A stretch of 64,000 nucleotides of DNA from Prasinococcaceae sp. CCMP 1430 (GCA_013416795.1 RQSC01000014.1:225597-289596), one strand, 5' to 3'. Positions 5,512 through 50,135 are shown, counted from the first letter of the stretch. Program-made: numbers and translations. Notes: a model not told the origin generated them from the sequence alone.

Positions 5512-5904
5512 TGGGGGGGGGCCCCCCCCCCCCCCCCCCCCCGCGCGCGCGCTTCGACGCACTTTGACCTCGTCCGACCACTGCTGGAGCTTCGGCGAGA
5601 ACTGCAGCGCCGCCGCTCGCATGATGCTCAGGCTCATGTCGCGGCGATTCAACCATGAGACGAGGGAGTGCTGCACGATGGGATAGTGCTTGCTGCTGCC
5701 CTTCAGCGAGGTCGAAGCCGCAAAACCCACGCTCGCCTCGGCGAGCATGAGGCCGCGCCCGAAAGTGTGGGGCGTAATCGCAGTGGCGGCGGCCGCGGCG
5801 GCCGCCGCGGCGGCGGCGGTGGCAGCAGTCCCAACCATTGGCCCTGCGCGCGTGGACGCGCCCGCCAGCGAGGCCGCCGAAGAGGCCGCGGGTGCCGTCA
5901 GCAT
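4507..5904 (-). CDS. Uncharacterised probable membrane protein, 3 exons (5904-5563, 5288-5097, 5004-4507)
   Basis: Phase-0 junctions AAA|GTGCGT..cgcag|AGG and AAG|GTGCGG..ccgcag|GAC join into one frame: ...LRRVFERVAERILRPELAWKLTK DFGASALRKAAR...LGVLAGW...GAGLGTLVRPGRGTYIGQVVG. From memory this resembles a conserved uncharacterised plant family. The start could be 5904 or 5838. Confidence 0.7.
5461..5542. repeat. Homopolymer block C51-T-G9-C21 inside an intron
   Basis: Read directly from the sequence; it lies in the 5562-5289 intron of the minus-strand gene. Confidence 0.9.
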
Positions 5905-6268
5905 GCCGGCCGTGCCGCCGCGTCCGGGCGGACGGGTCGAGCACGCGTTCGCGCGCACGCGCGTGCCTGCTCGCGGCCGCTCTGAGGTCGCCTGCCGGGC
6001 GCGGTTGCGCGCGGTGGAGCGGCCGTCGGCGGCCTGCCTGCGTCCCTCGATCAGCTCGGTGGAGCGCACGCAGGAGGTGGGTGGAGGCGCGGGAGTGCCG
6101 CGCACGGGGCGGGGGGAGAGTGCGCGCACTGTGGGGTGCGCAGGCGCGGCTGCTGCGCGCCATTCGAGGCGCAGCAGCATCGATAATTTCATCAGAGTCG
6201 CCCTTTCCAGGCGCAATTCTGTCTTATTCTCGCCCGGGGAGCTCAACTCACGCGGCTACAGTTTGGAC

Positions 6269-7345
6269 CTACTCCAGGGCGTCCAGCCATTCGAGCAGCT
6301 TGGCATTCGTCTCCTCCGGCGCGTCATCGAACGGGCAGTGGTTGGCGTCCACTGTGGTGTACGTCGCCGCCGGCCTGCGCGCGGGCAGAGTCGCGAAGAA
6401 CTGGCCGACCGGCCCATCCGGCGGTGTGATGGTGTCCGAGCGGCCGTACAGGACGAGCAGCGGCAGCTCCTCGGGCATCTTAGCGACGCACGCCTGCGGC
6501 GTCGGTCCCGGCGGGCCCGTCAGGATGCTGACGAAGGCGTCCAAGGCACCCTCGTCCTCCGCGCAGCGCGTGATGATGCGCACAAGCTCTTCGTCGGCAC
6601 GGCTTGTGTTGACATAGACGGCCCCGAGAGCGCCAGCTACCGACTCGGCCGTGCGGACTTTTTCAAAGATGTAGCGCGCGAAAGGCCTGAGCTTGAGCAG
6701 GGCGTCCAGGAGGAGAAAGATTGGCGCGACGAGAGTGAGCCGCAGGTCCCTCTCCCCCGATTCGCCCTGCCTGTTGAGCACCGCCTTGTTGTTCAGGCCA
6801 CCGGCGCAGTTGAACAAAACCACCCCTGAAAACACCTCGGGGCGCTCGGCCGCCGCGCACAGCGTGCTGAGCGAGCCCAGGCTGTTGCCACACACGATGG
6901 CGCGGTCGGCGTCAACCACTTCCGACACGAAGTCTGATATTTGCTCCCCCCACAGCTCAATCTCGTACTGCACGCGCGGCTTCTCGGAGCGGCCAAGGCC
7001 GAGCAGGTCCACGGCATACACGTCTCGTCCGGTGGCAGCGATCGCGCCTATGTTGTCGCGGAAGTGGCCCACCGCGCCGCCGAAACCGTGCACGAGCACG
7101 ACAGGCGGCTTACCGCCCCCGTTCCCTCGGCGCCCGTCCAACCGCGCGTAGTTGACCCGGTGGCCGCGCCACTCCCACGACTCGTACGCGCCGTCCTCGG
7201 TGAGCTCGAAGCCTCGCGAGGGAGCCGCCGCCGCCGCCGCCGCCGCCACCCGCCGCCGCGACCGCCCCCGCCCCACGCGCAACGCGGCGCGCGGCGCGGC
7301 CAGTGCGGGGTCCAACCCCGCCGCGACCGCCGCCGCCGCCGCCAT
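6269..7345 (-). CDS. CLD1: Plastid alpha/beta hydrolase, chlorophyll dephytylase 1-like
   Basis: Ala/Arg-rich transit peptide, LVHGFGG, nucleophile elbow GNSLG, FNCAGGLNNKAV, EGALDAFVSILTGPPGP, TPPDGPVG and catalytic His in NHCPFDD. These motifs match Arabidopsis CLD1 as I recall it. Confidence 0.85.
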   Translation of the reverse strand: MAAAAAVAAGLDPALAAPRAALRVGRGRSRRRVAAAAAAAAPSRGFELTEDGAYESWEWRGHRVNYARLDGRRGNGGGKPPVVLVHGFGGAVGHFRDNIGAIAATGRDVYAVDLLGLGRSEKPRVQYEIELWGEQISDFVSEVVDADRAIVCGNSLGSLSTLCAAAERPEVFSGVVLFNCAGGLNNKAVLNRQGESGERDLRLTLVAPIFLLLDALLKLRPFARYIFEKVRTAESVAGALGAVYVNTSRADEELVRIITRCAEDEGALDAFVSILTGPPGPTPQACVAKMPEELPLLVLYGRSDTITPPDGPVGQFFATLPARRPAATYTTVDANHCPFDDAPEETNAKLLEWLDALE

Positions 7346-7637
7346 CCCCCCTTGCCTAACCCCTTCTCCCCGCCGCCGCACCAGCGCGCCGCAGTGGCGC
7401 GCCGCAGCGCGCGCACACATCTTATCCTCTTCTGAGCCCAACCAGCACCGGGACAGTCTCGGGTGCGCCGCAGTAGGTCAAAATGCATCTGGCCACTTTT
7501 GACCTTGTTTTTAGAGGCGCATGCGAAGTCGTCTCCACCCGCCAAACGGTCTGGCGGGAAGGCCGGCGCGAGCAGGCCAGCGGTGAACGCCGCGGGCGCC
7601 AGAGCGGCCGCGGGGCGCGCGCCCGGCCTCGGCGGCG

Positions 7638-8606
7638 ATGACATGGGGGGGCTCGCTTGGGGCACTGCCGCCGCGCGAGCGGCACGCCGCGCTGCTCGCG
7701 GCGCTGCCGCGACAGCCGCCCAAGCGGACGCTCACCGACGCCGACCTCGTGCGCGAGACGTACCGCTTCCTGCGCTCGGCCGGCGACGACGCGGACGCTG
7801 CCAGGCAGGGCGTGTCCGTCGCGGCGCTCGCGACCGCCTACTACGCGAGGCTCCATCGCGAGTACGTCATCGCTGACCTCTCGGCAGCGGCGGAGGGCCG
7901 CGTGGGCATGCGCTGGCGCACGGAGGGGGAGGTGCGAGAAGGCCGCGGACAGTTCACGTGTGGCGTGCGTGGATGCTACGCGCCGGGCCCGCACGCGGAC
8001 GTGCGGGGGAGCGGGCGCTCGCGCGCTGTCCTCCGCTCGTACGAGCTTCACTTTCAGTACCGCGAGGCCGACGTCGACAAGGAGGCGCTCGTCAAGCTGC
8101 GCTGCTGCGAGCGCTGCTCTACGCGTCTTGCCCAGGCACGGCGCAGGGAAGCGCGCCGAGCCTCGCGGAGAAGCAGTCGCGGGGAGAGGGAGCTGAGAGA
8201 AACGGCGGCAGCTCCCGGCGGTGACGCTAATGCAGGGGAGGGCGCGGGCAGAGGCTCGAGCGCGGGCGGCGCGAAGGCCAGCCTTGGTGAAAACCTCGTG
8301 CGCACAAATGAGACGCTAGCAATACCGGCATCCATCCCGCTGCTCGGCTCCGCGCATGCGGACGCCAGGAAGCGCCAGCGTGGAGACATCTGCGGCGGGT
8401 CGACCGGGGGCGGCCGGAAGCACGCGCGCACGGAGGGGGCCGAGGGCGACAGCTCCCAGGCACGGGCCGCTGCGCCCGCGGGGGCGGACAGCGCTCCGCC
8501 GCGACCACCAGTGCCTGCGAGCGCGCACGTCCACCGACCAGGTGGGGCCGCCGCCCGAGAGGCCGAGGAGGCCGCCGAGCAGCTGCTGCGCGAGATGTTC
8601 GAGTGA
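7638..8606 (+). CDS. FRA10AC1: FRA10AC1 homolog (folate-sensitive fragile-site protein, splicing-associated)
   Basis: TDADLVRETYRFLR, YYARLHREYVIADLS, GMRWRTEGEVREGRGQFTCG..C, LRSYELHFQY.E and EALVKLRCCERC. Confidence 0.92.
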   Translation: MTWGGSLGALPPRERHAALLAALPRQPPKRTLTDADLVRETYRFLRSAGDDADAARQGVSVAALATAYYARLHREYVIADLSAAAEGRVGMRWRTEGEVREGRGQFTCGVRGCYAPGPHADVRGSGRSRAVLRSYELHFQYREADVDKEALVKLRCCERCSTRLAQARRREARRASRRSSRGERELRETAAAPGGDANAGEGAGRGSSAGGAKASLGENLVRTNETLAIPASIPLLGSAHADARKRQRGDICGGSTGGGRKHARTEGAEGDSSQARAAAPAGADSAPPRPPVPASAHVHRPGGAAAREAEEAAEQLLREMFE

Positions 8607-8644
8607 CGCGCCCCCGAGCGCGCTGCCTGCGCTGCCGCTCGCTC

Positions 8645-8661
8645 TAAACCCTGAACCCTAA
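8645..8661. repeat. Short interstitial telomere-like/telo-box repeat (TAAACCCTGAACCCTAA)
   Basis: About 2.5 units of plant-type CCCTAAA, between the FRA10AC1 stop and the P4H promoter. Confidence 0.45.
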
Positions 8662-9040
8662 TTATCGCTTCTTCAAAACAACTGGTCGTGAACGTTCCAC
8701 CCTTCCAACCTTGGATCCCCAGACCCGGACCGCCCAGAGGCCCCGCAGAGCAGTTCGCAGGCTGCGTTCCCCGCGCAACCGCCGAACAGAGAGGGAGGGG
8801 GCGGCGAGCGGGCGAGCGCAGCGCTGGGTACCGGCCGGCGGGTGGGCAGGGGTTCGAGGCGGCGGGATGGGCGAGGGATGCCATAGGGCGCTGCTCGCAC
8901 GCGGAGCCCCGCGAGGGCGGGTGGGGCAGCGAGTTGGCGAGCGAGAGAGCGCGCGTGCGGATGCGCTCGCGGGAGCGGGCGTGGGTGCTCCGGACGACTG
9001 TGAAGGGCAGCGAGCCGGGCGGGCGGGGGGAACGCGGGGC

Positions 9041-10341
9041 ATGGCGCGGGCAGCGGCGCGAGAGTATGGAGGAGTGCGTGTGTCTGTAGCGTATGTGCTC
9101 TTCATAGCCGCGATCGCGACGGCAGCGTTCCACATGGGGGTCATCGCCGCCGGGCGGAGGGGCACGCTGGAGCCGCGCGCAGCCGCGGAGCAAGCGTTGG
9201 TGGCGCGTGCGCGCCCAGACATCGAGCGCAGGGAGCTGTCGGTGACCGGGGCAGTGCGCGGCGCACGCGCTTCACGCGGCCCCAGCAGCAGTGAGGTGGG
9301 AGAAGGGTGGGCCACGGGTGGCGGCGGGGGCGTTCGCGTGATCTCGTGGGCACCGCGCGCGTCGGTGTGGCGCGGCTTCCTCAGCGATGCGGAAGCCGAC
9401 ACCATCGTTGCGCGTGCGCGGCCACTCATGGAGCGCTCGCGCGTGGTGTCGGAAACAGGCGAGGGCGTTGAGAGCAAGGCGCGCACTAGCCGTGGGGCTT
9501 TCCTGCCCAGGCACAATGTGAGCGACATTCGCAAAGTGGAGGACCGAATCGGTGCGTGCTTGAAAGAGCGCGAGAGAGTGTGCCACACCCGCAACTTTGA
9601 CGCAAGTGCGCTGGCGGGCACCGCAGCTGACCCTGCTCCCGCGTGTCGCTTCACCACATGCTCTCCCCTTCCGCCCCGCACGAGCGCACAGCCGCGTGGA
9701 CTTCCTTGCCATGGTACAACGGCGAGGCGATGCAAGTGCTGCAGTACGAGCGCGGTGAGGAATATACCGGTCATCCCGATTGGTTCGACGACAGGACAGG
9801 CAGCGCATCCCACCTCAAGAACGGCGGCCAGCGCGTGGCCACAGTATTGATGTATCTGTCGGACGTCGACGCTGGCGGCGAGACCGTCTTCGACAAGGCT
9901 GACCCAGCCGCAGAGGTGAATGCGTACGGCAATGCCCGCCAGGCCGCCGCCGAAGTTGCGCCGCTGCACGCGAGCACGTGCGCCTCCAAGGGACTCGCCG
10001 TGGCGCCGCGCAAGGGCGACGCCCTGCTCTTCTGGAACGTGCTCCCCAATGGGACCGCCGATCCGCTGAGTGTCCATGCGGGCTGCCCTGTGGATGGAAC
10101 TAGACCTAAGTGGACCGCCACCAAGTGGATACGCGCCGGCAGGCACTCGGCGGAGGGCGATCGTCCCCCGTCGCGGTGCATCGACACAGAGTCGATGTGC
10201 TCGTCGTGGGCGCGCAGCGGCGAGTGCGAAGCCAACCCGGACTTCATGCTTGGCGTGAACGGCTTCGACGGCGCGTGTGAGCTCTCGTGCAATCCGCAGT
10301 GCGCGGGCAAGCGAGCGCGTGACCCGGCCTCGGGGCGCTGA
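9041..10341 (+). CDS. P4H: Type II membrane prolyl 4-hydroxylase with C-terminal ShKT domain, 2 exons (9041-9551, 9692-10341)
   Basis: ISWAPRA, RTS.GAFL, Fe ligands HPD...HAGCPV, RVATVLMYL, GGETVF, KGDALLFW, KWTATKWIR and a Cys-rich ShKT tail (CIDTESMCSSWARSGECEANPDFM). The intron G|GTGCGT..cacag|CC restores the frame. Confidence 0.92.
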
Positions 10342-31445: not shown

Positions 31446-32135
31446 GGCTGCGGTCCTCCCTGGCCCGTCCCGGGAGCGCCTTGTGCGGGAGCGCGCGCCC
31501 GCTCCCGCGCGCTTTTTTTTTCTTTGGTCGCGTGGGAAAAAAAAGTGCCGCCGCATGGCAAGTTGCAGGCAGTGGGGACGTGCAGACGCACGACCGCGCG
31601 GTCAGCAGAGGGCACGGCCTCGGGCCGCGCGTGGCACGGGTGAAGACGCGACCGCTCCCGGGCCGCGTTCGCGTGCTTTCGCCTGCGCGGCGGGGGAGAG
31701 GGAGGGGGGGGAGGAGGGGAGGAGCGCACGAGTTCTCAGTGCCAGCACCGCCACGCTCTCCTCTGTCGCCGCGGACGCAGCGGGCTGCGCCGCGTGGGCG
31801 GACCGCCGCGCCCTGCTGGCAAGCGGGCGGGCGGGCGGCGTGTGCGCGCGTCGCAGACAGCGCCGCTATGCGCCTCGTTGTGCGCACCCGAGCCCATTGC
31901 AGCCGATGCTAACCCAGCCGCTCTCGCACGCACCCTCGCCCGTCGCGCCTGAGTAGAAGGTGCTCAAGATGCAGGCGGCGAAGTAAATAATTCATGAGCA
32001 CTTGCTGCTTGTACATCACAACATCGCCGTCGAGCGTCGACGGCGAGAGGTTCGGTCGAGGGAGCGGCGTCTTGCTGGCGCCGGTTCGCGAACGTGCTGC
32101 TGCGCGACAGGCTGACGCATGGCCGTATTGGTCGC

Positions 32136-35100
32136 ATGGGTCAAAGGGNGCGCGCGCGGCGGGTCGCCGCCGCGGCGTGCCGGCGGTGCGCGCCGCTGCT
32201 GCTGCTCGTAGTGCTGGCCGTGGCGATCGGCGGGTGGGTGCGCGATGCGGGCCATGCGCACAGCACCGCCTCCCCAGCCGCGGGACTGATTGCTCCTAAG
32301 GCTCAACGCAAGGCGCTGGAGGCTCTGGCGCCGCACCTGTCATCGTGGGAAGCCGCTGCATTCAGCGGACGCTGTCCGCGCGGCGTCTTCACGCCGATAA
32401 GGACATCGTCGTGGAAGGCAGCCGTGGCCGTGTGCATGCTGACGCCCGGCTGCGGTGCCGCCTCTCGTCACGTGCTCACGGGAGACACGCTCCTCTGCGA
32501 GGCGGTGGCGGCGACGTCGGCGGGCGCCGGCGTTCTCGGCGGGCTGCTGGGCGGCTGGCGCACGGAGGCGATGGGAGCGTGCAGCCATCACAGTTACAGG
32601 CTTGCACTCCTGCACGAAGGGACAGCCACGCATGCGGGCTGTGCGCACGCGGGCCTGCCAGGATTTGCGCTGGCGCCCATGCTAAAGCCGCTGGGCGGTA
32701 CCGGCGGCGGCGGCTGGCGCTGCGAGAAGCATGGCTCAGGCACGACGGTGGCACAGGAGGCGGCGGCGGCGTGCCTCGACGCGGGCATAGATAGATGCGA
32801 GGTCTTCGCACGACGCGGCGACGGCCTCACCATGCTATGCGTGGCGGATTCGGAGAGAAATCGCCGGACGACACCGGCCCTGCATGGAGGGGGTTGGGTG
32901 CTCGGCTGTCGGCGCTCTGGTGATGCGTGCGCGCGTGCATCGCCCTCGATGCCTCGCGGCGCTGGGGTGGTGACAGAGTGGGGGCCCGTGGTGCGAGGGC
33001 GCACGGGAGCGCCGCCTGAACCGAGCGCGCACGAGCTGAAGGCAGAGCTCGCTTCCACCGCTGGGCGGTCGGGGGTGGCCGTCGCCACGCGCATGTTGCG
33101 CCAGCGCGGTAATGCTCAATGCGCAGCCGCACAGACTCTTCTGCGCACCTTCACCGCCTCGGACACGTATGCAGAATCGATGTGCGCTGCGGAACCTCTC
33201 TGCACCGTCTGGACTCGCCTGGCCGACACGGGCAAGACCTGGCTCTGTCAAGGCTACATGAAAATCCACAACTCGCCTCGTGACAAAAGCTACGCGGTTG
33301 GATTCAAGCGCGGCTGTGAGTGGTACCGGGGCACCCGCGCAGAGGACGACAGTCGCCTTTTGCGACCTCCAACCTGCCTGGAGACGGGCGAGCTCGTGGG
33401 CAACCCGCTGCGCGAGCTGCCCTCGTGCCCGGCACCCAGCGTACCCATTCCCGTCTTCACCAAGGGGGTGCGGGCCATGCCGCTGCGGCCGGTGTGCGAC
33501 GAGTGCGAGCATGGGGGCATTTGCCCGCGACTGGAATCCACTGGGGATACGAGCGAGGAGGCTGGGCGCATGCGGTCTGCTCTGACAAAGGTGGCCAGGC
33601 AGCAGCTCGCGCCTCTGACTCACATCGCACCGAAAGCGAAAGAGCTTGCAGGCGCATTCAATCCCTCACTAGCCATACACCGCGGCGAAATGTACATCGC
33701 CTACAGGCAGGCGACGGCGACGCGCTGCTCGGGCAAGACCATTGAGGGTACGTACGAGCTCGATGATCCCAAGCTTGGTCAGTATGCGAGCAAGATTGGT
33801 ATCTGCCCGACCTATGAAGACACTATCGTGCCGCGCCAGCTCGAGTGCGTGCAGCTCAACCCGATGCAACCTCCTCCGAGGTTGGACGGGATGGTCCTCG
33901 ATGAAGGCGGCTTCGTAGGCGAGGAGGACGCTCGCCTGTTCTCCTTCCGGAACACATTGTATGTGTTGTTCAACGTGGGCGTCACGATGGCCGATGTCAG
34001 CACCGACGAACAAGTTATCTTCGCTGGCCGGATCCGAGTGAGGCGGATGCTCCTAGCGTCGGTCGACCCGCGCACCGGGAAGACTGGAAAGCCTCTCCTG
34101 ATCCGCATCCCAGGTTTGCGGGCGACGGACAATGTCAAAAATGTCATGCCGCTCGTCAAGCCATCCGAGGTGCTCCTTGTTCACAACATCTGGCCACTCG
34201 GCGTGTGCTCGCTCGATGTGGTGACCGGGGCGTGCGGAGCACCGGCGATCGCAGCACCTCCGAGGGCGCACGGCGATATCAGCGCGTACAAAGCGGTGGG
34301 GTCCCTCAGTGGTAGCACGCAGTTTGCTGCCGTTCCTGCTGGATTCATTGGGCTGGTGCATCGCAAGCAGGACATGGAGCTAGGCAGATTGTACACGCAC
34401 AAGTGGGTCCTGATCTCCAAGGAGCATCCGCATACACTCGTATGGCTCTCCGCCCCGTTCCGGCTGCCCGCAGCGCTCGCACGAAGCGAATGCGTGCTGG
34501 GTCACCCTCAGGGTTGCAGAGAGGGGCGCTTCGATCTGGAGGATGACGTGCAGTTTGCTTCTGGCGTGGTCGTCGACCTAGTCTCGAAGACCGCTCTGGT
34601 GAGCTACGGTGTGGCAGACTGCTACTCCTGGGTCGCCCGCGTGGCGCTGCCCCCCGAGGCGATGCGCCAAGAGCCTGGCTTGGACGACGCGCCGTTGGCC
34701 CTGGTGACGAGGGTGCCCACTAGCGTACCAGATGATGCGCGGCCCAGGCCCGTCGTCCGGTGGGATTCGCCCCTGACGGACATGTCTGGCTTCGCATTCG
34801 TGACACGGGCCATGGCGGAGCTTTTCCTTGCGGATGGAACCTTTACCTTCCAGATGTGGAATCGCTTCGACGGCAGCCGGGCCTTCGAGGCTGATCGCTA
34901 CGGGGAGATGTACGCCTCAGCGATACGCAGTCAGGCCGACCTGGTCCCGCAGCCAGACGTGACCGTGCGGATGTACTGGGAGCCTAACTTTCAGCCCGCA
35001 CCAGCCGGGAAGCTCGTGGTCTATCTCCCTTGGGAGTTCGGGCCGATTCCGACGGCGTGGGTAGAGTCGCTCAACGCTGTTGCGGATGAGGTGTGGGTGC

Positions 35101-35936
35101 CCGCCGACGCAGTCGTAGAGGGGATGTTGCAGAGCGGCGTCGATCGGCACAAGCTCGCCGTTGTGCCCCATGGCGTGTCAACGCAGGTTTGCAAAGACCC
35201 TGTTGTCGACGCTGCTCTCAAGAGCAAGCTGCATCGCCGCAACGGTACAGAGGGAGGGATGTCAGGAGGCCCGCCCTTCAGCATGTTATACCACGGTGGC
35301 ATGCTGTTTCGCAAGGGTGTCCCGCAACTGATCGAGGCGTATCAGTTGGCGTTCACTGGCCGCGACAACGTCGAGCTCGTCGTGCACTCTGTGTACGGCG
35401 ATGCGACCGTCGAAGCGATGCTGCAAGAGCATGTGAAAGCGGCGGTGTCCGACCCGCGCCTGCCGCGTCTGCGCAAAGACGGCCGGAGACTTCAGCCCGA
35501 CGAGCTCGCTGAGATGTACCTGGAGGCAGATGTGCTTGTGCACTCCTCTCTGAGCGAAGGCCTGGGCCTCGGGGTCGTTGAGGCCATGGCCCACGGCCTT
35601 CCGGTCATAGCGTCCGAATATGGCCCGCCTGCCGACTTCGTCACGCGCAGCAACGGCTTCCTGTTCCCGGCGAAGCAAAGCCCGTGCAAGCTCTATCCTT
35701 GCGCGAAGGACTCGCGGAGCGTGTTCAGCCAGGACTGGACCACAACGAGCGACCTCGTGTGGGGTGAGTATAGCCCCGAGGCGCTGGCGGGCGCCATGCG
35801 CGATGCCTACGACAACCGGGCGACCCTTACGGAACGCGGGATGCGTGCGAGACGAGAAATCTGTACCGACTACAGCTGGGAAACAGCACACAGCATAGCG
35901 AAGGAGCGGCTACTCGAGCTCGCTGCGAAGCCATGA
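32136..35936 (+). CDS. Multidomain type II membrane glyco-enzyme: 3 PAN/apple-like Cys repeats + GH130-like beta-propeller + GT4 glycosyltransferase (about 1266 aa, intronless)
   Basis: TM LLLLVVLAVAIGGWV. Propeller motifs AFNPSL..YIAYR, GEEDARL, VKNVMP, LSGST and VQFASG..VSYGVADC. GT4 motifs PWEF, DEVWVP, VVPHGV, RKGVPQLIEAY and SSLSEGLGLGVVEAMAHGLPVI. There is an ambiguous N at 32149. Confidence 0.88.
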   Translation: MGQRXRARRVAAAACRRCAPLLLLVVLAVAIGGWVRDAGHAHSTASPAAGLIAPKAQRKALEALAPHLSSWEAAAFSGRCPRGVFTPIRTSSWKAAVAVCMLTPGCGAASRHVLTGDTLLCEAVAATSAGAGVLGGLLGGWRTEAMGACSHHSYRLALLHEGTATHAGCAHAGLPGFALAPMLKPLGGTGGGGWRCEKHGSGTTVAQEAAAACLDAGIDRCEVFARRGDGLTMLCVADSERNRRTTPALHGGGWVLGCRRSGDACARASPSMPRGAGVVTEWGPVVRGRTGAPPEPSAHELKAELASTAGRSGVAVATRMLRQRGNAQCAAAQTLLRTFTASDTYAESMCAAEPLCTVWTRLADTGKTWLCQGYMKIHNSPRDKSYAVGFKRGCEWYRGTRAEDDSRLLRPPTCLETGELVGNPLRELPSCPAPSVPIPVFTKGVRAMPLRPVCDECEHGGICPRLESTGDTSEEAGRMRSALTKVARQQLAPLTHIAPKAKELAGAFNPSLAIHRGEMYIAYRQATATRCSGKTIEGTYELDDPKLGQYASKIGICPTYEDTIVPRQLECVQLNPMQPPPRLDGMVLDEGGFVGEEDARLFSFRNTLYVLFNVGVTMADVSTDEQVIFAGRIRVRRMLLASVDPRTGKTGKPLLIRIPGLRATDNVKNVMPLVKPSEVLLVHNIWPLGVCSLDVVTGACGAPAIAAPPRAHGDISAYKAVGSLSGSTQFAAVPAGFIGLVHRKQDMELGRLYTHKWVLISKEHPHTLVWLSAPFRLPAALARSECVLGHPQGCREGRFDLEDDVQFASGVVVDLVSKTALVSYGVADCYSWVARVALPPEAMRQEPGLDDAPLALVTRVPTSVPDDARPRPVVRWDSPLTDMSGFAFVTRAMAELFLADGTFTFQMWNRFDGSRAFEADRYGEMYASAIRSQADLVPQPDVTVRMYWEPNFQPAPAGKLVVYLPWEFGPIPTAWVESLNAVADEVWVPADAVVEGMLQSGVDRHKLAVVPHGVSTQVCKDPVVDAALKSKLHRRNGTEGGMSGGPPFSMLYHGGMLFRKGVPQLIEAYQLAFTGRDNVELVVHSVYGDATVEAMLQEHVKAAVSDPRLPRLRKDGRRLQPDELAEMYLEADVLVHSSLSEGLGLGVVEAMAHGLPVIASEYGPPADFVTRSNGFLFPAKQSPCKLYPCAKDSRSVFSQDWTTTSDLVWGEYSPEALAGAMRDAYDNRATLTERGMRARREICTDYSWETAHSIAKERLLELAAKP

Positions 35937-36003
35937 CGGACACCAACTCGTACAAACATCGACATTAATTATTGTGTAATCACATTAAGGGAATACATAC
36001 ACC

Positions 36004-38231
36004 TCAAGACGCGACGAAAGCCTCAGGGAAGCCATCGGGCACGCGAGCCAGCGATTGCGCGAAGGCCTCCATGCCCTCCCGACTGCTATCGATCTCACAC
36101 CACAAAGGTGGTGCAGAGCCTCGCGCAACGTGAGGCCATGGCTGGCCAGAGAGGCGCGCAACCAGCGCCTGTGTGTCCACCGCGTGCTCGCGTGCCCAGG
36201 CATCGACGTCTTCGGCATAGGCCAATGGGAGGTCAGGCAAAGCACCCGATGCTCCAGGCGGCACCCTGTGTCGCCATTTGGTATTGCATGCCCTGCCAGC
36301 ATGGCGCATCGAGCGAAGCCCCGCCGCCGCCAGCGTGCTCAGCGCCGAAACGACACTCGAGGTCGGCTGCGTCCCTGACACGAGCCCAGTCACACCCGTG
36401 AGGGGGAAAGGCACGTTCCCTCCGGGCGCAGATGTGTCCTTGACAGCCAACTCGAGAATTGTCCCCAAGGCTTGGAGGCCGCGTGGTCCCTCGAAATGGA
36501 TTGCGCGGAATTGCTGGTGTCGCCTCGTGGCATCGAATAGGAACGCCGCTGCAGCTGTGCCGAGGCTCCCTGGAAGAACCGCACGCGCGGTGACGCGCTC
36601 TGTCAGGCCAGAGAGCACCGCAGACGCGTTGACCCTCGCAGCGGTGCCCTCGCCGCCGGCAGACAGGAAGAGCGCATCCACTCCAGCAGCGCCCATAGCC
36701 ATTGAGCTCAGTCCCAGGTTGCCGCCGAGCTCCACGAATCGCCCGACGTCAGCAAGTGACCCGTCGCGACCACTTTTGGCCGCATGCACAGAAGCGGCGG
36801 CGGCTACGAGGCCAAGCTGCGTGTCGAGTAGCCCAGGGCGCTCCCCCGGTGGCAGCCCACCTTGCCACGCTCCCCATGCGCTCAGTGATGCCCCCGCATC
36901 AGTGCCAGTGTAGCCCTGCCGCTTTGCCATGGGATGCACTAGAAGCATGAGCGCCCGCCAATTCTCAGCACGGCCGGGGCTCGAAGCGAGCGTCTGAGGC
37001 AGCTGCACGCGCACAGTCACTGGGTGGCCGAAAGTAGTAGGGGGCGCCTCTGTGGCTGGGAGAGCCGGCGACGACACAGGCCACGCCAGGCGCGCCCAAA
37101 GATGGCGCCGCAACCACCGCTGAATGTATGTCATGCCCTCGATATCCTTCCAGCTCCCAGCAAAATGGTGCAGCATGAACACGCCCTCGGAGCGCGGGTC
37201 AATGCCGTCCTTGGCCGCCGGATGCGCTGCCGTGGCCACCCGCGGGAGCAGCCACAGGCGCTCGGCGAGAGCGAAGGGTGGCATCGACGATGCATCGGCC
37301 CCACCTGCGAGCGCAGACGCGACGGCCTCTCGGGCGTACGCAGCGACCTCGTCCGTCCACGCGCCCGGGCCGGTGCGCTCGAGCGTGGCGCGATCCGACA
37401 GTGCCGCGCCGTTCCCGACGCCGGCTCGAGCACGACGGCCACCGGCGCTTGCACCGTTCTTCCCATCCGCCGAGCGCGCTGGAGGCACGCCTCCTCCCGT
37501 GCCGTTTTCAACTTGGTGCGGAAGCCACCGCCGCTGCTCAGCGCCGACGGCAGCAACGACGCTGTCTGCCATGCGGCGGAGCATCGGGTGGCCCTTGGAG
37601 GCGCCGATAGCCCACTGCTGGAATTGGCGTACTCGCGCGTACGACCGCGCCCTCGCGGCCTCTGCCGACTCGAATTCCTGCTCGACGCCCACGATGAGCT
37701 CTGCTCGACTGCCGAGCCAGCTGTCGAGCGGCTGCATGCATTCGACGTCGGTGTCGGCGTAGAACCCGCCCTCGGCGTGCAGCACGAGGTAGCGGAAGAG
37801 GTCGGCGCGCTCGACCGGCTTCGGCAGCCCATCGTACGCGTCGATGACGTCAGGGTATCGCCGCGCGACGAGCTCCCGCGCGCGAGTGTCGCTGTAGTAG
37901 CGCACCTCCCACGTCGGGTTGAGCTCCGCCCAGGTAGCCATCGCAGCGCGCGACGCCGGTGGCACCGCCGACCAGCATCTGAACGTCTGGTGGACTATGC
38001 GCTGCACCGCGAGTGGCGAACGCTCGTGCACACGTGCAGGGAGCGACCAGAACGGCGGCTCCTCGTCGGTGCACGCTGCATGCGACGGCGACGGCGCACC
38101 CAGCGGCAGCGAGGAGAGCGCCGCGGCGACACCCAGGGCGAGCGCGACCGCGGCCACGGCGCGCACGCACCACCGCCCGGCGGCCGCTACGGCGCGTCCC
38201 CCCCCCCCCCCCCCCCCGCCCGCCTCCCCAT
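36004..38231 (-). CDS. GT32 (OCH1-like alpha-mannosyltransferase) fused to a degenerate FkbM-like methyltransferase domain; ATG at 38231 is out of frame by 1 nt in a G20 tract
   Basis: RIVHQTF, TWAELNPTW, ERADLFRYLVL..EGGFYADTDVEC (DXD), QFQQWAIG, TGPGAWTD and HHFAGSWK. The C-terminal FVELGGNLGLSSMAM resembles SAM motif I. The open frame begins at GTG 38166. Confidence 0.85.
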
Positions 38232-38697: not shown

Positions 38698-39555
38698 ATG
38701 GCGGCGCAGGCGCGGGGCGCGGCGCGCCAGGCGGCGATGAGGGGTTCGCTGGTGGGGATAGCAGCGATGGCGGCGATGGCGACGCTGGCGCTCATGGTTG
38801 GCTTCGCGCGGCCCGCCGCGGCCGTGTCCCTCGTGCTCTCAGAGGACGCGCCCGAGTGCCTCCGCCACACGAACGAGTACGATGGCGGACGTGTGCTGAT
38901 CACGTGGGTGAGCGCCGCGCGCCTCGACCCAGCGATCGCGACCGGCCAAAAGGAGCGCCAGGACACGACCTCGTCGCTCAAACGCATTTCGGAGAAGCTC
39001 CGCGATGATGTTCCCGACGCGCCTGAGGACACCCGCGTCGGGCTGTGGCGCGTGCTGTCAGACACGAAGCGCACGAAGGTCGCGGGGTTCAGTGGTCCCG
39101 ATGGTCGTGAGGATATCGAGTCGATGCTGAAGGGCAAGTACGAGCTGTGCTTCGAGACGTCAGGCGTAGAGCACGACATCTATGATCACATGGTCACCGT
39201 TGACGTGGTGTGGAGCAACCCATACCAGCAGCCCGTGCAGGGCCCAGACGACGAGAGCCATGTGGATGAGGGCAAGCGCGCAATGCAGATGGAGGACGCG
39301 AAGCACCTCAAGCGCGCGCTAGAGGATGTCAGCGACGAGATCCTTCGCCTCCGTGCAGACGCGAAGTACCTGCTTGCCAGGCAAAAGCGGCAGCTGAAGA
39401 CGATCGAGTCCAACGGGCGGCGCGCGGTGTGGTCAAATGTGTGGGAGACGCTCGTGCTCATCGCGGCAGCGTTCGGGCAGGCCTTCTTCATCCGCTTCAT
39501 GTTCAACCGCGCCAACGGTGGCTCCTTTGCCATGGGAAAGGGGTTGAGCGTGTGA
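38698..39555 (+). CDS. p24/EMP24/GOLD-domain cargo receptor
   Basis: Signal peptide, GOLD cysteines (ECL...GKYELCF), coiled coil, then TIESNGRRAVWSNVWETLVLIAAAFGQAFFIRFMF. Start is 38698 or 38737. Confidence 0.88.
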   Translation: MAAQARGAARQAAMRGSLVGIAAMAAMATLALMVGFARPAAAVSLVLSEDAPECLRHTNEYDGGRVLITWVSAARLDPAIATGQKERQDTTSSLKRISEKLRDDVPDAPEDTRVGLWRVLSDTKRTKVAGFSGPDGREDIESMLKGKYELCFETSGVEHDIYDHMVTVDVVWSNPYQQPVQGPDDESHVDEGKRAMQMEDAKHLKRALEDVSDEILRLRADAKYLLARQKRQLKTIESNGRRAVWSNVWETLVLIAAAFGQAFFIRFMFNRANGGSFAMGKGLSV

Positions 39556-46739: not shown

Positions 46740-49700
46740 ATGGGCTGCCTGCAGTCGAAGGAGGCGCGACCGGGGCTCGGCCACCAGCACACCGGCAAGG
46801 GCCTCTCGTTGAGCCTCGTGGGCAATGGACACAGCGCCGGACAGACCCACCCCGGCGCAGGAGTCTTCCGCGTGGACTCCCCAGCCGATTTGCTGAGTTC
46901 GCCCAGCGGCAGCTTCTCGGGGCCGCTGACCAAAAAGGAGATCGTCAGCCGCATCACGGGTTCGTCTGAGACGCAGCGCTATGAGGTTCCTTCCGAGGCG
47001 GGCAGCTATTCGTTGGAGTACGCCTACATCAGCCAGCGCGGGTACTACCCCGAGTCGCTGCACAAGAAGAATCAGGACACCTATTGCGTGCAGACCGCGT
47101 TCCGCTCGCCGGACTGCTGCCTGTTCGGCGTGTTCGACGGCCACGGCGAGAACGGGACGCCGTGCGCTGCGTTTGCACGCGATCGCATCACCGAGCTGCT
47201 CAAGGCGCACCGCTCGCTGACATCGGATCCCGAGGAGGCGTACCGCGACGCCTTTCTGGAGGCCAACAAGATGCTGCACCGCGCGTACGTCGATGATTCG
47301 ATGAGCGGCACGACAGCCATCACCGTGATGGTGCAGGGGCGCTTCATCTACGTCGCCAACGTGGGCGATTCGCGTGCGGTGGTCGCTGAGCGCACGTTGG
47401 GTGGTGCGAATGGCCATCCGAACGGCGGCGGTGCTGAGGCCAACGGCGCGGCCGGGCGCTCGCCGTCCTTCAGCCGCAGCTCGGGCTCCGCTACCTGCGG
47501 CAAGATCGCCAACGGCGCTGGCCGGCTGCGTGCGCTCGATCTGAGCCACGATCAGACGCCCTTCCGCCGCGACGAGTGCGAGCGCGTCAAGAAATGCGGC
47601 GCGCGTGTGCTGACGCTCGATCAGCTTGAGGGGCTCAAGGACCCCACGGTCGAGTGCTGGGGCGAAGTGGAGGACGAGGATGACGGCGACCCGCCGCGGC
47701 TGTGGGCCACCGACGGTCTGTACCCGGGCACTGCCTTCACGCGGTCAATCGGCGACATGGTCGCTGAGAAGATCGGCGTAATCGCGGAGCCCGAGGTGCT
47801 GGTGCGCGAGCTTACTCCCGCCAATCCGTTCATCATCATCGCTTCGGACGGCGTGTGGGAGTTTTTGCCCTCGCAAATGGTAGTCGATATGGTGGCGAAG
47901 TACGATGATCCGCAGGAGGCAGCGAGGGCGGTCGTCCAGGAGTCGTACCGCCTGTGGCTGCAATACGAGACGCGCACAGACGACATCACCTGCATCGTCA
48001 TCGCGCTCAAGGGTCTAGACATGGAGGTCGGGGCCGAGGCCATGCCGAGTCCGCAGGTGCTACGCGCGCGTTCCAGGAGTCGCAAGTCCATCTTCGACGC
48101 AGACGAGGGCTTCAACTCTGACAGCGGCTCGCCCAAGGCCGTCGAGCAGCGTCGCGTGCGCCGTAGTCTGAGCCGCGCCAAGCGCAAAGCCATCGAGGCG
48201 ATCATGTCATCGGCGGGTGCCGACGATGGTGAGCCCTTCGTGCCGCCCAAGCTGCCGCCCAAGACGCAGCTTGAGCGTGTTCAGATCGACGAGGCCGTGC
48301 GTTCCAATTTCCTCTTCGCACACCTCACGGAAGAGCAGCGGAATCGCATCTTCGACTTGATGGAGAAGCGCACCGTGAGCCCTGGCGAGCTCATCATCCG
48401 GCAGGGCGAGCATGGGGAGCATTTCTACATCGCGGGAAGCGGCCGGTACGACGTGCTGCTGCACCCGGAGTCTTTGGACTCTCCCTCTAAAGGAAGCGGC
48501 GGGGGCAACAACGATTTGGGCGATACGGTTCATACGTACTTTGCTAATGACGACATGAAGCCATGCTTCGGCGAGCTGGCGCTCATGTACAACAAGCCGC
48601 GCGCGGCAAGCGTGGTGGCGCGCGAGCGTGGCGAGTTGTGGGCGCTGGACAGGCGCGCGTTCCGCACGGTGCTCATGAAGGCGTCGTCGAATCGCGAGCT
48701 GCTGAAGACGCTGCGCAATGTCGAGGTGCTGAAGGCGCTCACGGCGGGCGAGCTGCAGCGGCTGGCCGACGTGATGGCCGAGGAGTCCTACGCCGCCGGC
48801 GAGCACATCATCCGCCAGGGCGAGATCGGCGAGCGCTTCTTCATTATTAAGGAGGGCAAGGTGGTGTGCACGGTGCGCGAGGACCCCGCCGATGAGCAAG
48901 AGGAGCCGCGCGTGGTGCTGCGACTCGCGGCGACCGACTTGGACCCATACTTCGGTGAGCGCGCGCTGCTCAACGACGCGCCTCGCGCAGCCAACGTGGT
49001 CGCCTCTGGCGCGGTTAAGCTGCTGCACATCGGGCGTGGCACCTTCGAGGACGTGCTGGGGCCGCTGCAGCACATCATTGACTCGAACCGCCAACGGCGC
49101 GAGACACAGGCGCGGCGAGCGTCCGAGAGCCGCCGCGCGCTCAAGCGGCCGTCGGTGACGGGCGTCGCCAGCGTGCGCCGTGACCAGGTGAAGTGGCTGA
49201 GTCACTGCTACACCACCCGCACCACCTCGGTGGGCCTCGTTCGCGTGCCGCGCAAGAAGGACCCAATGACGCTCATCATGTCCTCAAAGAGTGCCGTGAG
49301 CGCGCTCGGCGCGCAGGAGGCACTCGTGCGCGAGGTCTCGCTCTACCGCGAGCTCAGCTCGAGCCTGGCGAGCCGCTTCGTGCCGCCCTCGGTTTCGAAC
49401 TTCTCCGACAGCCAATACTTATGCTCGTTGATCAATTGCTCGGCTGCGTGCACGCTCGACGATCTTCTCTTCGAGCCCGTCGCCGAGCACACCGCCCGCT
49501 ACTACATCGCCTCGGTGCTATGCCTACTCGAGTTCCTGCACCGCGAGGGCGTGGTGTTCCGCGGGGTGTGCGCCGACACGCTGCTGGTGGACACCGGCGG
49601 ACACTTGCAGGCGCTCGACTTTCGCTTCGCAAAGCGCCCCGGGGACGCCGCTGAGGGGCGCACGTTCACGCTATGCGGCGCGCCCGACTACTTGGCGCCG

Positions 49701-50135
49701 GAGGTCATCAATGGCGGCGGCCACGGTGCCGCAGCGGATATGTGGTCGCTTGGCGTGCTGCTTTTCTTGATGCTTAGCGGCGACCTGCCCTTCGGCGCGC
49801 ACGGCGAAGACGAGATGAAGGTGTACAACCGCATCGTCGCTCGCGACTTCCGCACGCCCACGACCTGGTCGACGGCTGTCATCGACCTCATTGACCGCCT
49901 CCTCACCACGGACGAGCGCGAGCGCATCACGCTGCACCAGGCCAAGGCGCATGCGTTCTTCAAAGGCATGGACTGGGACGCGCTGGACGGCTTCCGCTCC
50001 TCGGTGCCGGCGGAAGCTGCGGACCGCGTTGAGAGGGTGATCGAGGCCAAGCAAGCGAACGACGCCCAGAACGAGGACCTCGTGGGCGCTGATGACTACA
50101 GCGGCGACGAGGCGTGGTTTGCAGGGCTGTGGTAG
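46740..50135 (+). CDS. PP2C phosphatase + two cyclic-nucleotide-binding domains + AGC/PKG-like (pseudo)kinase; N-terminal myristoylation motif MGCxxS
   Basis: PP2C: NQD, FGVFDGHG, SGTTA, ANVGDSRAV, TRSIGD, IASDGVWEF, DDIT. cNMP: FGELALMYNKPRAASV and FGERALL..PRAANV. Kinase: FRG, DFR, TLCGAPDYLAPE. This is the architecture of the plant PP2C/CNBD/kinase protein. Confidence 0.95.
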   Translation: MGCLQSKEARPGLGHQHTGKGLSLSLVGNGHSAGQTHPGAGVFRVDSPADLLSSPSGSFSGPLTKKEIVSRITGSSETQRYEVPSEAGSYSLEYAYISQRGYYPESLHKKNQDTYCVQTAFRSPDCCLFGVFDGHGENGTPCAAFARDRITELLKAHRSLTSDPEEAYRDAFLEANKMLHRAYVDDSMSGTTAITVMVQGRFIYVANVGDSRAVVAERTLGGANGHPNGGGAEANGAAGRSPSFSRSSGSATCGKIANGAGRLRALDLSHDQTPFRRDECERVKKCGARVLTLDQLEGLKDPTVECWGEVEDEDDGDPPRLWATDGLYPGTAFTRSIGDMVAEKIGVIAEPEVLVRELTPANPFIIIASDGVWEFLPSQMVVDMVAKYDDPQEAARAVVQESYRLWLQYETRTDDITCIVIALKGLDMEVGAEAMPSPQVLRARSRSRKSIFDADEGFNSDSGSPKAVEQRRVRRSLSRAKRKAIEAIMSSAGADDGEPFVPPKLPPKTQLERVQIDEAVRSNFLFAHLTEEQRNRIFDLMEKRTVSPGELIIRQGEHGEHFYIAGSGRYDVLLHPESLDSPSKGSGGGNNDLGDTVHTYFANDDMKPCFGELALMYNKPRAASVVARERGELWALDRRAFRTVLMKASSNRELLKTLRNVEVLKALTAGELQRLADVMAEESYAAGEHIIRQGEIGERFFIIKEGKVVCTVREDPADEQEEPRVVLRLAATDLDPYFGERALLNDAPRAANVVASGAVKLLHIGRGTFEDVLGPLQHIIDSNRQRRETQARRASESRRALKRPSVTGVASVRRDQVKWLSHCYTTRTTSVGLVRVPRKKDPMTLIMSSKSAVSALGAQEALVREVSLYRELSSSLASRFVPPSVSNFSDSQYLCSLINCSAACTLDDLLFEPVAEHTARYYIASVLCLLEFLHREGVVFRGVCADTLLVDTGGHLQALDFRFAKRPGDAAEGRTFTLCGAPDYLAPEVINGGGHGAAADMWSLGVLLFLMLSGDLPFGAHGEDEMKVYNRIVARDFRTPTTWSTAVIDLIDRLLTTDERERITLHQAKAHAFFKGMDWDALDGFRSSVPAEAADRVERVIEAKQANDAQNEDLVGADDYSGDEAWFAGLW

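Follow-up and report, generated by a model that had tools for sequence, protein, structure and literature searches.

Whether two neighbouring glycosyltransferase genes in a green alga form a dedicated glycan gene cluster, or stand side by side by accident, is the question raised by positions 32,136 to 38,231 of a 64,000-nucleotide stretch of DNA from Prasinococcaceae sp. CCMP 1430 (GCA_013416795.1 RQSC01000014.1:225597-289596; the whole stretch is called the window below). An earlier note, made from the sequence alone, had proposed that the pair encodes type II anchored, multidomain glyco-enzymes and constitutes an undescribed two-gene cluster for a methylated mannan or a wall or mucilage glycan. 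The analysis points to a plainer answer: the locus probably holds two separate, real secretory-pathway glycosyltransferase genes that lie tail to tail by happenstance. Gene 1 is more notable than the pair, since it falls in a family of propeller-GT4 fusions that has yet to be characterised, and since its host is an alga for which no wall polymer has been described.

The description of two adjacent, convergent genes without introns is confirmed. Both genes are continuous open reading frames (ORFs) separated by a short spacer:

32136..35936, plus strand: coding sequence of gene 1, 1267 codons, intronless, with a single N at 32159 (codon 8) and full-length homologs P0001-P0004
35937..36003, no strand: spacer of 67 bp between the convergent stop codons
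36004..38231, minus strand: coding sequence of gene 2 as intended, from an ATG at 38231, intronless
36004..38166, minus strand: ORF of gene 2 as assembled, 720 codons, one base off the ATG frame

The long ORF that holds gene 1 runs from 32094 to 35936 on the plus strand, with the gene 1 ATG at 32136. Four modules had been read across the two genes. Three of these, the GH130-like propeller, the GT4 domain and the GT32 domain, are borne out by the analysis, while the FkbM-like module is not. Gene 1 divides as follows:

32190..32240, plus strand: hydrophobic signal-anchor helix, read in the translation and preceded by a short basic tail, consistent with type II topology
32373..33338, plus strand: three Cys-rich repeats of one type, weakly PAN/apple-like (hidden Markov model, HMM, of repeat 3)
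33444..34676, plus strand: five-bladed beta-propeller of the GH130/GT91/GT108 superfamily (fold, profile and relatives)
34725..35933, plus strand: GT4 (GT-B, retaining) domain with an EX7E motif (Pfam and motif)

Membership of the propeller in the GH130/GT91/GT108 beta-mannoside superfamily is supported by its fold and by its family profile, which agree with each other and with the earlier assignment. An AlphaFold2 model built on a 4-sequence alignment is all-beta (predicted local distance difference test, pLDDT, 57.5; predicted template-modelling score 0.67). Foldseek matches this model to propellers of GH43, GH130 and GT108 (E about 1e-7), and in VIA-align the top ranks go to twenty GH130 entries (Z 14-16.3), ahead of GH43 (13.8) and Leishmania GT108 (12.4-12.8). 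Searched with a profile, 1.84 billion representatives yielded 292 relatives of the propeller. Among the 50 relatives that were scanned (E 0.01 or better), 14 match the Pfam model BMT (GT91), six match GH130 and 11 carry a GT4 domain. Ten relatives were also scanned singly; four of the ten touch BMT and/or GH130, and only P0070 reaches a gathering score (GH130, 29.7 against 26). The best BMT match of any relative has an E-value of 8.8e-7, and within the ten scanned singly BMT scores are at most 22.3 bits against a cut-off of 28.3. Searched against the PDB, a 34-sequence family profile returns GH130 chains only, led by 4onz (1e-7) and the beta-1,2-mannobiose phosphorylase 7fip (4.8e-7).

The catalytic motif of GH130 is recognisable in the family. 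GxEDxR (GlEDpR) aligns to GCEDPR/GVEDPR of 4onz, 7fip and 3r67, and YGxxDC aligns to YYGxAD. D162, K232, N233, P251, G290 and G389 are invariant across the 34 sequences, and N73, P74, R88, G159, R164, H306, Y317, H319, F339, G374, D392 and C393 are nearly so. The motif Asp is the proton donor in GH130 (D104 of UhgbMP), and linkage is set by the residue before this Asp and a later basic residue, with E/K for beta-1,2, E/R for beta-1,3 and Y/R for beta-1,4 (PMC7660257). E161 and K232 would be the corresponding pair in the propeller, of beta-1,2 type as in GH130; the catalytic Asp is retained, and the suggested tie to beta-mannoside enzymes is supported. Spacing is compatible with this mapping: K232 and D392 lie 160 residues apart (154-164 in two GH130 references), and H306 and Y317 lie 11 apart, as does their putative counterpart pair in UhgbMP, H231-Y242. 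The relative P0070 has no PDB match that would place the middle blades on GH130 numbering.

What the propeller does is a separate question from what it resembles. GDP-mannose glycosyltransferase activity is documented in the beta-1,2 clades of GH130 and in GT108 (PMC12814180). Secreted or anchored GH130 members are hydrolases, and the phosphate-binding His is absent in hydrolases (PMC7660257). The propeller of gene 1 might be a lumenal beta-mannosidase, that is, a trimming hydrolase of GH130_3 type, or an inactive lectin-like module. The best family-profile matches include the GH130_3 hydrolase-type chains 4onz, 3r67, 3qc2, 3taw and 5a7v, GH130 members that are secreted or anchored are hydrolases, as just stated, and some 26 residues past K232 comes D258, a conserved Asp that by spacing is near the GH130_3 base. 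This explanation is nonetheless quite unlikely. A His at the H231 spacing is nearly invariant in the family, whereas the hydrolases are without that His (PMC7660257); more relatives match the BMT model of GT91 than match GH130; and the propeller shares its polypeptide with a transferase. The type II layout, moreover, is the one found in fungal GT91 enzymes. A lumenal, GDP-mannose-dependent transferase is the preferred reading of the propeller because the anchor, the many conserved Cys and the fusion to a transferase occur together, as in GT91.

Gene 1 can be compared with three characterised families. The propeller shares its five blades with GH130 phosphorylases and beta-1,2-mannosidases (4onz, 7fip, 5b0p, 3wau; Z up to 16.3), together with the catalytic Asp of GxEDxR, a blade 1 Arg and the C-terminal YGxxD. 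It differs from GH130 in having no Pfam PF04041 score and in being membrane-anchored, Cys-rich, extended by extra loops and fused to GT4; the second phosphate-binding Arg of the phosphorylases is not evident. The fungal Bmt/Wry beta-1,2-mannosyltransferases of GT91 (Pfam BMT, PF12141) have a type II Golgi layout like that predicted for gene 1, and use of GDP-mannose with inversion is presumed for both. GT91 enzymes are single-domain fungal proteins, however, and the window protein has no PF12141 match, while the matches of its relatives are sub-threshold among the ten scanned singly. The Leishmania mannogen MTPs of GT108 (6q4x-6q50) have the same propeller fold (Z 12.4-12.8) and set a precedent for a propeller that acts as a GDP-mannose beta-1,2-mannosyltransferase (PMC12814180). 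Unlike gene 1, the MTPs are soluble and cytosolic; they score below GH130 and GH43, with no sequence-level match. The gene 1 family would tie fungal GT91, whose fold is unsolved, to the GH130/GT108 propeller, as its members touch both Pfam models.

The remainder of gene 1 is consistent with residence in the secretory pathway. Its translation begins with MGQR and an X that arises from the N at 32159; a basic stretch follows and then a hydrophobic helix, and gene 2 opens in the same MGxR manner, as had been noted. Type II topology is assigned to gene 1 by the positive-inside rule. The propeller has eight invariant Cys and the N-terminal part contains 21 Cys, a content that fits an oxidising lumen. 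The repeat-3 HMM matches repeats 1 and 2 of the window protein (i-E 1.7e-5 and 0.052) and also P0003 and P0004; the PAN/apple label comes from a single weak PAN_4 match in one relative (E 0.0028). Pfam covers only the C-terminal GT4 domain of gene 1, which reaches 56.8 bits with Glycos_transf_1 (cut-off 26.4) and 57 bits with Glyco_trans_1_4, in agreement with the earlier note. The EX7E motif lies in a SEGLGLGVVE stretch, with both Glu invariant in a 5-sequence alignment, and PDB matches of the domain are to generic GT4 enzymes only.

Three pieces of the two proteins are left unassigned by Pfam: the N-terminal part of gene 1, its propeller and the C-terminal half of gene 2. These were scanned against Pfam, and against NCBIfam together with the C-terminal half from the sister lineage, at E up to 10. 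The sole line returned was a chance-level TrbM match, and neither the Cys-rich repeats of the N-terminal part nor the C-terminal half of gene 2 found a family in these scans. A phmmer search of the N-terminal 912 residues of gene 1, propeller included, against the PDB returned nothing.

The propeller-GT4 fusions to which gene 1 belongs form a green-algal family that is so far uncharacterised. Full-length relatives are few: a 99% identical environmental copy, a sister-lineage protein at 73%, a transcript-derived protein at 39% and CYMTET_35289 of Cymbomonas at 32%. Named relatives of the propeller come from Cymbomonas, Picocystis and Pedinophyceae YPF-701, and the others are environmental. Fusions of propeller and GT4 occur in Cymbomonas and in several environmental algal contigs, and GT4 is recognisable in the nearer relatives and in P0011 and P0032; no recognisable GT4 was found in the Picocystis and Pedinophyceae propeller relatives. 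The genome paper of Prasinoderma coloniale reports none of the usual wall-polymer synthases and leaves the wall chemistry open (PMC7455551). Conservation across several green algae of early-branching lineages makes the gene 1 family a concrete candidate for such a synthase. On one Tara scaffold (L005, 3105-6048), sulfotransferase and cytidylyltransferase-like genes that may be glycan-related adjoin a 36% identical homolog of gene 1.

Gene 2 is a shorter gene with a difficult start. Its features are as follows:

38198..38217, minus strand: G20 homopolymer just past the start codon, which disrupts the frame; a length of 21 or 18 would restore it
38110..38160, minus strand: Ala/Leu-rich signal-anchor helix, read in the translation, with a counterpart in the sister contig
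37132..38004, minus strand: GT32 (GT-A, retaining) domain with a DTD motif and a low-complexity insert (Pfam and Och1 structure)
36007..37044, minus strand: orphan C-terminal domain of about 345 residues, constrained, with no family match

The ATG at 38231 reads MGRRAGGGG, and its frame stops at 38187-38189, after 14 codons. The start that had been assigned to this ATG is thus not in frame with the 720-codon ORF, and the G20 run lies between the two. An intron across the run was considered and rejected, as the stretch is too short and has no plausible splice sites. The frame that follows the run is kept in sister contig L002 (basic stretch, RWC, helix), and for this reason an assembly error in the homopolymer is the likeliest cause of the frame break. 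Matches of two same-species Tara scaffolds (L009 and L010) to the window end short of the run, at about 38107-38109, about 90 bp downstream of it, which suggests that the region is hard to assemble.

Gene 2 could instead be a pseudogene, with the G20 frameshift real and no anchored protein made. The 14-codon ATG frame is what such a gene would show, and the 720-codon ORF offers no other in-frame ATG ahead of the anchor helix. Even so, a pseudogene is very unlikely: the ORF is otherwise intact over 720 codons, the ratio of nonsynonymous to synonymous substitution rates (dN/dS) is 0.20-0.29, and the sister lineage keeps the N-terminal reading frame beyond the run. Long homopolymers are classic sites of assembly error, and same-species Tara scaffolds are 99% identical over gene 2, without stops. 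Purifying selection acts on all domains of gene 1 and gene 2. Against the sister lineage, dN/dS is 0.14 in the propeller, 0.16 in the GT4 domain and 0.40 in the repeats of gene 1, and 0.20 in the GT32 domain and 0.29 in the C-terminal domain of gene 2.

The GT32 module of gene 2 and its link to Och1, both proposed previously, are well matched. The domain reaches 53.5 bits with Pfam Gly_transf_sug (cut-off 23; 4e-14), and the closest solved relative is the Och1 alpha-1,6-mannosyltransferase 9n3s (2.6e-14, about 85 residues aligned). The DTD motif falls at ORF residues 138-140, and D138-T-D140 is kept in the sister lineage. The DXD motif and the type II anchor are common to gene 2 and Och1-type enzymes, whereas the low-complexity insert and the 345-residue orphan domain are additions of gene 2. 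Since GT32 includes Gal and GlcNAc transferases as well, membership does not fix the sugar used by gene 2. The sister gene on L002 has two short intron-like inserts in its GT32 domain, at about 304-375 and at about 529-666, and one of the two contains an in-frame stop. The window gene 2 is without both, and P0005 is a gene model that reads through the second.

The C-terminal domain of gene 2 is the piece on which the idea of methylation depended. Changes in this domain are concentrated at third positions, and this bias together with the dN/dS of 0.29 indicates real coding sequence. Its only relatives in a full-length search, a domain-alone search and a metagenome locus scan with an alignment are the same-species P0168 and the sister P0005. 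The proposal that this half is a divergent FkbM-type S-adenosylmethionine-dependent methyltransferase, O-methylating the sugar added by GT32, draws on alternating strand and helix elements in a low-confidence AlphaFold2 model and on G-x-N-x-G and E-G stretches that we presume to resemble FkbM motifs, a likeness supported by no test. With a pLDDT of 38 that model cannot be used, and Foldseek finds no fold match for it (best E 0.33, template-modelling score <0.2). Pfam and NCBIfam are blank at E up to 10, a phmmer search of the PDB returns only a chance-level ketoacyl reductase (E 0.13), and neither the end of strand 2 nor K-I-D-x-E-G has its expected acidic residues in place. An FkbM-type identity is therefore improbable. 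With the methyltransferase module unsupported, the methylated mannan loses its support as well.

The distribution of the pair bears on whether the two genes are a cluster. The convergent arrangement is kept in the sister Prasinoderma lineage on two independent contigs (dS about 0.7-1.2), one of which (L001) has an intergenic spacer of 89 bp. No relative of gene 2 lies beside the gene 1 homologs of Cymbomonas (L004), two environmental algal contigs (L005, L006) and Pedinophyceae (L007), and a second metagenome scan with the propeller alignment added one 4-kb locus, with no useful flanks. Adjacency is not conserved beyond close relatives, and the reading as a gene cluster is weak and ordinary. 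The C-terminal domain of gene 2 is restricted to the genus while the gene 1 family is broad, and the two genes thus do not co-occur phylogenetically. Prasinoderma coloniale has 83 glycosyltransferases among 7,139 genes (PMC7455551), and 83 x 82 / 7139 gives 0.95 chance adjacent glycosyltransferase pairs per genome. A convergent spacer of 67-89 bp is a small target in which a break is unlikely anyway.

A dedicated module that builds one glycan, methylated mannan or otherwise, as the earlier note had it, is unlikely on this evidence. Some points do speak for such a module. Four catalytic-looking modules stand within 6 kb; a convergent pair with a spacer below 100 bp has persisted at dS about 0.7-1.2 next to a sister upstream flank unmatched in the window; mannosyltransferases occur in all three recognisable families; and neither the wall polymer of Prasinoderma coloniale nor its synthases have been identified (PMC7455551). 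Set against these are the absence of adjacency at the four more distant gene 1 loci, the confinement of the C-terminal domain of gene 2 to the genus, the unsupported methyltransferase, the roughly one glycosyltransferase pair expected by chance and the low odds of a break in 67 bp. One sister contig (L008) also lacks most of gene 2. This Tara contig is 99.5% identical to L001 until 103 codons into gene 2 and then continues into unrelated sequence, so that either the assembly is chimeric or gene 2 is cut short by a structural variant. The unrelated part (5803-10036) encodes a 1075-residue protein with a weak GT4 match.

Several observations count against two intact, independent glycosyltransferases. 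The window propeller itself has no match in Pfam or NCBIfam at E up to 10, and its model is of low confidence at a pLDDT of 57.5. The equivalences of K232, H306, Y317 and D392 come from motif order and spacing, without superposition. An Arg at the phosphate-binding R168 position of GH130 phosphorylases is not evident in the family, and the conserved D258 is near the GH130_3 hydrolase base position by spacing. Gene 2 is out of frame as assembled. Finally, the upstream gene of L008 is without a homolog in the window and the sister lineage keeps the pair nonetheless, which would also fit selection for linkage; with its sister upstream flank unmatched, the pair may have outlived a nearby rearrangement.

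Separate glycosyltransferases remain the preferred reading, and a mechanism can be outlined for them. Gene 1 would be a type II membrane protein with its entire catalytic portion in the Golgi lumen and with three Cys-rich repeats that probably hold an acceptor glycan or glycoprotein. The propeller would most likely transfer beta-mannose from GDP-mannose with inversion through the Asp of GxEDxR; the Glu before this Asp and the invariant Lys-Asn, a beta-1,2 signature in GH130, suggest the linkage. The GT4 domain may then add a second, alpha-linked sugar with retention, using EX7E. Gene 2 would be a type II, Och1-like GT32 enzyme, DXD-dependent, retaining and alpha-linking, to which a lineage-specific C-terminal domain is appended. 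Both enzymes plausibly act in the same compartment on mannose-containing surface or wall glycans, perhaps with a shared product, and their adjacency would reflect local gene order retained within the genus rather than a dedicated pathway.

A bolder extension can be drawn from the same features. The propeller might be a Golgi beta-1,2-mannosyltransferase, the first such family in the green lineage, and with GT4 form a single-polypeptide co-polymerase of an alternating beta/alpha mannose-containing polymer, the wall or capsule material of Prasinoderma, that GT32 decorates. We regard this combination as a distinctly long shot.

The surroundings of the pair are those of housekeeping genes, as first described. 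Neighbours in the window encode UFD1, a p24/EMP24 cargo receptor, a WD40 protein, OSBP, nitronate monooxygenase, an AAA ATPase, a PP2C-cNMP-kinase fusion and GCN1. A larger glycan cluster was considered and rejected, as no further glycan genes are present within the 64-kb window. Window G+C is 62-74% throughout, in keeping with the 69.8% of the Prasinoderma coloniale genome (PMC7455551). The WD40 neighbour falls in a cluster of at least 90% identity with PRCOL_00002749 of Prasinoderma coloniale. The p24/EMP24 GOLD-domain cargo-receptor gene (38698-39555, plus strand) is the divergent neighbour of the GT32 gene. Farther along, an ORF of 1131 residues (46740-50135, plus strand) joins a PP2C phosphatase, two cyclic-nucleotide-binding domains and a protein kinase domain.

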